From Adineta vaga (lineage: Eukaryota; Animalia; Rotifera): a stretch of DNA of 64,000 nucleotides. Made by a program: the position numbers and the translations under genes. The DNA lies in contig CP075493.1 of NCBI GenBank assembly GCA_021613535.1, forward strand, positions 7,316,001-7,380,000. Direction: 5' to 3'. The notes below the pieces were generated by a model that was given only the letters and a program-made list of their open reading frames with translations, had not been told where the DNA came from and searched no databases. The stretch's first letter is position 1; every line of letters begins with the position of its first letter. Positions 31,696 through 32,039 of the stretch are shown here, piece by piece.

Positions 31696-31800
31696 GTGTT
31701 GCTCTGGCAGATCAGTGTTGCCACCGATCCGCACGATTTCGTCATCGCAACATGTATTTAATCCGCAAGGATATTTACCTCTTGGTAAGTTGTAATAAGC
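31696..31800 (-). ncRNA. Spliced leader (SL) RNA gene, copy A
   Basis: The minus strand reads GCTTATTACAACTTACCAAGAG|GTAAAT, matching the recalled bdelloid SL exon (GGCUUAUUACAACUUACCAAGAG) followed by a splice donor. Identity to copy B covers 105 nt up to a T-run, matching the recalled SL RNA length of 105-106 nt. Confidence 0.92.
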
Positions 31801-31816
31801 AATCTGTTTTCACGAC

Positions 31817-31918
31817 GTGTGGAGCAAAACGTTTTCGTTGTCTCTACATTTATTGTTTTGGAAGAAGCAAACGAAAGAGTGCAAAGTGTAGAGACAGCAT
31901 AGATGTCGTGCTCCACAC
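31817..31918. promoter_or_regulatory. Back-to-back bipartite snRNA-type promoters of the two SL RNA genes
   Basis: TGTAGAGACA at -48..-39 and TGCTCCACAC at -26..-17 are identical and identically spaced upstream of both copies (31887-31896 and 31909-31918 on +; 31839-31848 and 31817-31826 on -). The sequence between them has diverged. Confidence 0.75.
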
Positions 31919-31934
31919 ATCTCTCAGACAAATT

Positions 31935-32039
31935 GCTTATTACAACTTACCAAGAGGTAAATATCCTTGTGGATTAAATACATGTTGCGATGACGAAATC
32001 GTGCGGATTGGTGGCATCACTGATCTGCCAGAGCAACAC
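31935..32039 (+). ncRNA. Spliced leader (SL) RNA gene, copy B
   Basis: SL exon 31935-31956 GCTTATTACAACTTACCAAGAG, donor GT at 31957. Three differences from copy A, two in loops and one C-G to U-G. Confidence 0.92.

Follow-up and report, generated by a model that had tools for sequence, protein, structure and literature searches.

The 134-nt spacer (31801-31934) that separates two head-to-head SL RNA genes in the window, i.e. in the whole 64,000-nt stretch of Adineta vaga DNA that was analysed, is a real promoter footprint, probably with a function. In the reading that we favour, to which we assign a probability of roughly 70%, the spacer would be a compact divergent promoter driving both SL genes, with three blocks in each ~67-nt half, an upstream block (box A) that is common to the U2 genes, and transcription that is likely due to Pol II. 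Judged by the promoter sequences compared below, box A is an element of an SL/U2 promoter class and not a general bdelloid proximal sequence element (PSE).

The two SL RNA genes occupy positions 31696-31800 (minus strand) and 31935-32039 (plus strand). Each is ~105 nt long, and they are 97% identical (105/108 positions matching). In both copies the SL exon, GCTTATTACAACTTACCAAGAG, is followed by a GT donor; it spans 31935-31956 in the plus copy (from the G at 31935, with the donor at 31957) and 31779-31800 in the minus copy, where it starts from 31800. The published bdelloid SL has 23 nt, GGCTTATTACAACTTACCAAGAG (PMC3795323, Table 1), and the exon in the window equals this sequence minus one 5' G. 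Since a T is present at -1 in 45/45 SL copies of the genome (44/47 representatives overall), the first G of the published SL is not templated, and +1, assumed from the published SL, is likely at G 31935. The 3' end was placed by sequence comparison, as conservation among the SL copies stops at ...GCAACAC (+105), which in the plus gene is followed by TTTC and A-rich sequence. In most SL copies an A-rich stretch follows a run of four to six T (T4-6). The bdelloid SL RNA has been reported to be ~100 nt long (PMC1925144). A canonical Sm-binding site (R-A-U3-6-G-R), typical of most SL RNAs, was absent from the 108-nt SL gene. An Rfam analysis of the whole window gave no match; there was no rotifer SL family at threshold, and Rfam was thus unable to confirm the SL genes.

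The features of the spacer that had been described in the original prediction were found again. The 10-mer TGTAGAGACA is located at -48 to -39 of both genes (31887-31896, plus strand; 31839-31848, minus strand) and TGCTCCACAC at -26 to -17 (31909-31918, plus strand; 31817-31826, minus strand), and outside these boxes the symmetry of the spacer has indeed been lost: between -67 and -1, 20/20 box positions match between the two promoters versus 19/47 of the others. The bases adjoining +1 are symmetrical as well, with 6/7 of the last bases identical. The arms form a 174-nt inverted repeat (87% complementary) and SL genes are multicopy and dispersed, so that the 10-mers might be viewed as functionless remnants, left by a recently duplicated inverted segment or by gene conversion between copies, or as the terminal repeats of a mobile palindrome. 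We find this explanation hardly credible, as the 19/47 matches elsewhere are at the random level (six of the 19 fall in the last 7 nt) and the boxes are retained, between unrelated flanks, in a second gene class and in other bdelloids. A recent palindrome leftover and MITE terminal repeats were therefore rejected, both being contradicted by the cross-species and cross-class data.

A larger set of promoters was collected for comparison. The scanned genome (100.8 Mb in 6 contigs) contains at least 40 SL genes, most of them in head-to-head pairs, with 45 distinct combinations of gene and upstream sequence. When metagenome contigs were searched for exact copies of the SL exon followed by GTA, 96 further distinct promoters were obtained on 95 contigs, giving 141 distinct SL promoters altogether (45 of this genome, 96 from metagenomic bdelloid contigs). 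We took these contigs to be bdelloid because the SL is a bdelloid trait, undetected in the monogonont Brachionus (PMC1925144). The SL RNA bodies and flanks vary widely among them, which indicates that many species were sampled. From the whole collection, a low-redundancy set of 47 SL promoters was prepared, less than 70% identical to one another over -70 to -1.

In these 47 promoters the information content peaks at -51 to -40, -34 to -21 and -11 to -1, and is near zero at -70 to -59, -38 to -35 and -20. The three peaks define (i) box A (-51 to -40), with the consensus A-TGTGT-A-R-R-GAC, (ii) box B (-34 to -21), with the consensus aGATGTCGTGCtc, and (iii) a proximal block (-11 to -1, abutting +1), with the consensus CGAgaaAARTT. 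The best conserved bases were A-51 (94%), T-46 (89%), A-41 (87%), G-47 (85%), G-42 (83%) and C-40 (81%) in box A; A-32 (85%), T-29 (81%), T-31 (79%) and G-27 (79%) in box B; and T-2 (98%), T-1 (94%), A-4 (89%) and A-9 (81%) in the proximal block. Mean pairwise identity amounted to 0.62 in box A, 0.52 in box B and 0.59 in the proximal block, compared with 0.31 in the far flank (-70 to -52). Within the full set of 141 promoters, 129 had an in-register box A and 120 an in-register box B, and the spacing from A to B was invariant in 117/118. The SL copies are related by duplication, so that these counts are not fully independent; clustering at 70% identity and the inclusion of a second gene class lessen the dependence only in part. 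The claim that real promoter elements, kept by selection, lie at fixed spacing upstream of SL genes is thus borne out, box A being kept across the 141 promoters while the flanks are randomised.

The two predicted 10-mers fared differently in this comparison. The first corresponds to the core of box A, whereas the second touches only the 3' edge of box B: the conserved block is aGATGTCGTGCtc at -34 to -21, and the CACAC half of TGCTCCACAC is lineage-specific. The mean pairwise identity of the 3' half of the second 10-mer is 0.39, and when TGCTCCACAC is compared with the 96 metagenomic promoters, 3-6 of the 10 positions are mismatched in most of them. Nor is the N12 between the 10-mers (AGATGTCG in the plus copy) a neutral spacer, as its right half belongs to the conserved block. 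Used as a spaced pattern in a scan of the genome, the two 10-mers gave 34 matches at up to 3 mismatches, versus 5 for the control pattern read backwards, and the pattern gave no match in 100 shuffles of the window. As many as 32 of the 34 genome matches were inside SL gene spacers, while two (C3:18340636 and C4:118025) had no SL gene at the corresponding place. One match of this kind, with 3 mismatches (L068), contained no Rfam RNA and was taken as a chance hit.

Scored with matrices built from metagenomic sequences only, the individual elements of the spacer differ in strength between the two genes. Box A (-51 to -39) of the plus gene (31884-31896, plus strand), which contains TGTAGAGACA, reached 16.0 bits, and that of the minus gene (31839-31851, minus strand), with the same 10-mer at 31839-31848, 12.0 bits. 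Box B (-34 to -21) of the plus gene, AGATGTCGTGCTCC (31901-31914, plus strand; its 3' part overlaps TGCTCCACAC at 31909-31918), scored 19.4 bits. At the corresponding position of the minus gene, AAACGTTTTGCTCC (31821-31834, minus strand) is a diverged "type 2" box B, which keeps the TGCTCC part and scored 5.6 bits. The start-proximal block of the plus gene (-11 to -1; 31924-31934, plus strand) ends in AAATT next to the G at +1, and that of the minus gene (31801-31811, minus strand) ends in AGATT. Most of the head-to-head pairs in this genome contain such a type 2 box B, and box B, poor as it is in the minus copy of the window, may be dispensable or flexible. Among the genome copies, the promoter score was not clearly related to gene integrity (rho = -0.27, p = 0.07), a comparison in which truncated copies and register shifts of 1 nt act as confounders.

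The length of the whole divergent spacer is conserved. Among 63 distinct head-to-head pairs, taken from this genome and from the metagenomic bdelloids, 61 had a spacer of 132-135 nt (mode, 134 nt), although the central spacer sequence is randomised across the pairs. With the length held in this way despite random sequence between the boxes, the two halves of the promoter would seem to function together as a single, geometrically fixed unit. The divergent arrangement of the pair leaves no room for a distal enhancer. In the 63 spacers (that of the window and 62 others in loci L001-L194), the two half-promoters within a pair usually differ in flavour.

Box A is also present upstream of the U2 genes. 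Rfam models detected 19 U2, 7 U6, 6 U1, 3 U4, 3 U5 and 2 U3 matches in this genome. In the U2 genes the sequence A-TGTGT-NN-R-GAC has its C at -39, and +1 is preceded by TAGTT; the metagenomic SL contigs supplied 12 more distinct U2 promoters with the same box A and start context. When 21 U2 promoters (12 of this genome and 9 metagenomic) were scored with a box A matrix derived from SL promoters only, the best match was located exactly at -51 in 21/21, at 8.3-19.3 bits (99.9th percentile of the background, 5.9 bits). Nine diverged U2 promoters all retain A-50, G-46 and G-41/A-40/C-39. Box B was recognized in only one of the 21 U2 promoters, and a TATA box is absent from both SL and U2 promoters. 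The SL and U2 genes are, in addition, physically linked across bdelloids, on many contigs, and U2 was the only snRNA adjoining SL genes on contigs fetched solely for SL.

Several further observations were made around these loci. SL-like genes inside U2 clusters (L072, L075 and L078; C5:10.91-10.93 Mb and C6:4.52 Mb) have altered exons, e.g. ...ACTTACGAAGAGGTATAT, and a box A whose register is shifted or degraded. A 5S rRNA gene (L132:14330-14448) shares a metagenomic bdelloid contig with three SL genes. A box A-like site, ATGTGTTGAGACACGACAGATAT, is present at C2:12696868-12696890 (minus strand), away from known SL and U2 genes, and the genome contains a single U12 gene (C1:8468895-8469050, minus strand).

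The other small nuclear and nucleolar RNA genes examined do not follow this pattern. With the SL-derived matrix, box A was found in register in 0/24 U1, U3, U4, U5 and U6 promoters. Instead, these genes (loci L081-L099 and L195-L196, in each of which the gene starts at base 1501) carry another element at about -61 to -43, either TTCACCG-N-TTTT-G-TTTTGCA or (C/T)TACT-R-TGCAAT-TTTTGC, with a TATA box downstream of it at about -31 to -24. The U6 genes have TATATAA at about -30, a run of eight or nine T (T8-9) at the 3' end and this PSE type other than box A. The U1, U3, U4 and U5 genes have no T-run, and a AAATGAAA-like motif is located 10-25 nt downstream of them. The main difference between U6 and these four presumed Pol II gene types, which also have a TATA box, is the 3' signal. 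Three of the six U1 matches (L084, C2:2628065; L085, C6:4233946; L086, C5:14662872) begin with ATACTTACTTT instead of ATACTTACCTG, which means that the 5' splice-site recognition sequence is altered; these three carry the TCACCG-type element and the three canonical U1 genes the CTACTGTGCAAT type. By the criterion of promoter sequence, the genome has two small nuclear RNA promoter architectures.

For the proposal that the spacer contains the bdelloid equivalent of the PSE, the outcome is thus mixed, the motif occurring at other SL genes and at U2, but not at U1, U3, U4, U5 and U6, which lack box A in register. The motif had also been expected to help in finding other snRNA-class genes. A genome scan with a strict box A plus ATRT core, a pattern that misses many true SL promoters, gave 12 hits, i.e. 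8 SL loci and 4 elsewhere, compared with 5 for the control, and it revealed no further class above the control. A stronger form of the proposal, in which both 10-mers constitute a general bdelloid snRNA PSE, bound by canonical SNAPc and usable for all snRNA-class genes, could draw on the PSE-like position and fixed spacing of the elements, on the presence of box A in U2 (SNAPc-dependent in the animals studied), and on the SNAPC3 locus and weak SNAPC1 match in the genome. We nevertheless regard it as unlikely, given that 24 U1, U3, U4, U5 and U6 genes use another element plus TATA, that the scan gave 4 hits outside SL and U2 against 5 in the control, and that the second 10-mer is not conserved across species. 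Moreover, the TCACC start of the element of U1/U4/U6 type resembles the human PSE, TCACCNTNA, more closely than box A does. This TCACCG-type element is at least as good a candidate SNAPc site as box A. The searches revealed one locus for SNAPC3 (two exons, 88 and 56 bits) and one for SNAPC1 (a weak match, 29 bits); the single SNAPC3 locus, with no sign of a second complex, likewise argues against a general PSE role of the 10-mers.

In the divergent promoter that we favour, each ~67-nt half of the spacer would have three blocks at fixed distances from the start. Box A would be the class-defining upstream element, at which a sequence-specific factor would set the start ~40-50 bp downstream, in the manner of a PSE; that this factor is SNAPc would be pure conjecture. 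Box B, largely SL-specific, may help to position the basal machinery in the absence of a TATA box, and it occupies the position of the fly PSEB (Pol II snRNA genes) or the U6 TATA box. The sequence CGAgaaAARTT followed by G would form the start-site context, with A(G)TT-G as a putative initiator. The polymerase of the SL genes is most likely Pol II, since box A and the A(G)TT start context recur in U2, which has no T-run.

It is also conceivable that the SL genes are Pol III units, with boxes A and B as a TATA-less external promoter and the 3' T-run as a terminator. The RNA is short (~105 nt), and in 91/120 low-redundancy SL genes a T4-6 run is found at a fixed place within a few bases of ...GCAACAC, both of which would fit such units. 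However, 29/120 SL genes, including the plus copy of the window with its TTTC, have fewer than four T, and the true Pol III genes of this genome, those of U6, have a TATA box and T8-9. The U2 genes, which share box A with the SL genes, lack a T-run, and to our knowledge U2 is a Pol II transcript in all eukaryotes studied. Furthermore, a cap has to be passed from the SL to mRNAs, and the untemplated 5' G of the published SL was probably added by cap-dependent cDNA methods. Transcription by Pol III therefore seems improbable, and Pol II remains the polymerase of the reading that we prefer.

Which factor recognizes box A is a separate matter. It is possible, though rather doubtful, that the protein binding box A is either a variant SNAPc or a dedicated factor other than SNAPc, and that SL and U2 constitute a separately regulated class, the SL perhaps having arisen on a U2-type promoter. 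The two non-overlapping promoter classes within one genome and the SL-U2 linkage across bdelloid species are consistent with such a factor. A precedent is provided by C. elegans SNPC-4, which alternative partners redirect to piRNA motifs. On the other hand, SNAPC3 and SNAPC1 were each detected at one locus only, and no candidate factor was found. The SL RNA also showed no similarity to U2 RNA above shuffled controls, and the same was true of U1, U4 and U5 RNA; derivation of the SL RNA body from U2 thus finds no support. This explanation, moreover, overlaps with the divergent promoter favoured above and differs from it only in naming the factor. Equally tentative is the fuller scheme of two systems, a canonical PSE plus TATA for U1, U3, U4, U5 and U6, and box A with a dedicated or re-targeted factor for SL and U2, in which the SL gene, as a bdelloid innovation, would have been born on the promoter of U2, to which it is still linked, or would have lent its own to U2.

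Among the closest known systems, the snRNA promoters of flies resemble the SL promoter in their layout; in them the PSEA is followed, 8 bp further on, by the PSEB (Pol II genes) or a TATA box (U6) (PMC1761439). Both the rotifer promoter and the Drosophila PSEA/PSEB, recognized by DmSNAPc, are compact and bipartite, with fixed spacing to +1 and an upstream element at about -40 to -60 (PMC1761439). The gap between the elements is 5 bp in the rotifer (A at -51 to -40, B at -34 to -21) versus ~8 bp in the fly, and a second element of the fly type, at about -32 to -25 in place of a TATA box, is found as box B in SL but not in U2 promoters (1/21). The likeness is one of geometry: box A has ~12 bp, compared with 21-25 bp of the fly PSEA, and a single PSEA family serves U1, U2, U4, U5 and U6 in Drosophila, whereas box A is confined to SL and U2. 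More generally, box A resembles an animal PSE in being placed at a fixed distance ~40-60 bp upstream (129/141 SL and 21/21 U2 promoters), but in the animals studied the PSE is common to all major snRNAs, and among these box A occurs on U2 only.

The vertebrate PSE, bound by SNAPc, is likewise a proximal element at a fixed distance, and vertebrate U6 also has a TATA box and a T-run (PMC3499247). Vertebrates use the PSE alone for Pol II and the PSE plus TATA for Pol III, unlike the rotifer, in which U1, U3, U4 and U5 have a TATA box. In this respect genes of the U1/U3/U4/U5 type are more like those of plants. The element resembling the human PSE (TCACC...) sits on U1/U4/U6 in the rotifer, and not on SL or U2.

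Other organisms with SL RNA offer further parallels. The SL RNA genes of trypanosomatids are multicopy, with a Pol II promoter. This promoter (bipartite plus initiator; SNAPc/TRF4/TFIIA) is, as in bdelloids, dedicated, compact and composed of several blocks, and it differs from those of the other snRNAs, which in trypanosomatids are Pol III genes with tRNA-like elements. However, the lineage and the sequences are unrelated, and the trypanosomatid genes form tandem head-to-tail arrays, in contrast to the head-to-head pairs of bdelloids. The nematode SL1 and SL2 genes, too, are placed on an upstream element of snRNA type. In C. elegans this PSE is common to the SL and all snRNA genes, unlike the upstream element of the bdelloid SL, which is shared with U2 only.

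Three SL genes with differing promoters (C5:10.9 Mb, C5:9.9 Mb and C6:1.43 Mb) contain the same foreign insert (L075:2108-3196, also in L014 and L035), located at +41, after GGATT. The translation of its open frame shows three CCHC-type spacings, one of which is matched by Pfam zf-CCHC (E = 4e-6), and the insert looks like a retrotransposon site-specific for SL RNA genes. The NeSL elements of nematodes are likewise specific for a site in SL RNA genes.

No description of rotifer SL or snRNA promoters was found in the full-text literature searched, a scope outside which the 2005 discovery report (Mol Biol Evol) falls. The promoter map proposed here consists of three blocks within 51 bp, the complete two-way unit having 134 bp, and, if correct, it would offer a practical start for designing cassettes to express small RNAs in an animal for which transgenic tools are almost lacking. 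The most interesting outcome is the split of small nuclear RNA promoters into two classes. The animals examined to date use a single PSE family for all their major snRNA genes (PMC1761439), and a division into U2 plus SL versus U1, U3, U4, U5 and U6 would, if true, raise the question of what reads box A. In the same way, a promoter shared between SL and U2, together with the linkage of their genes, would bear on the origin of the SL system, which the sister group seems to lack.
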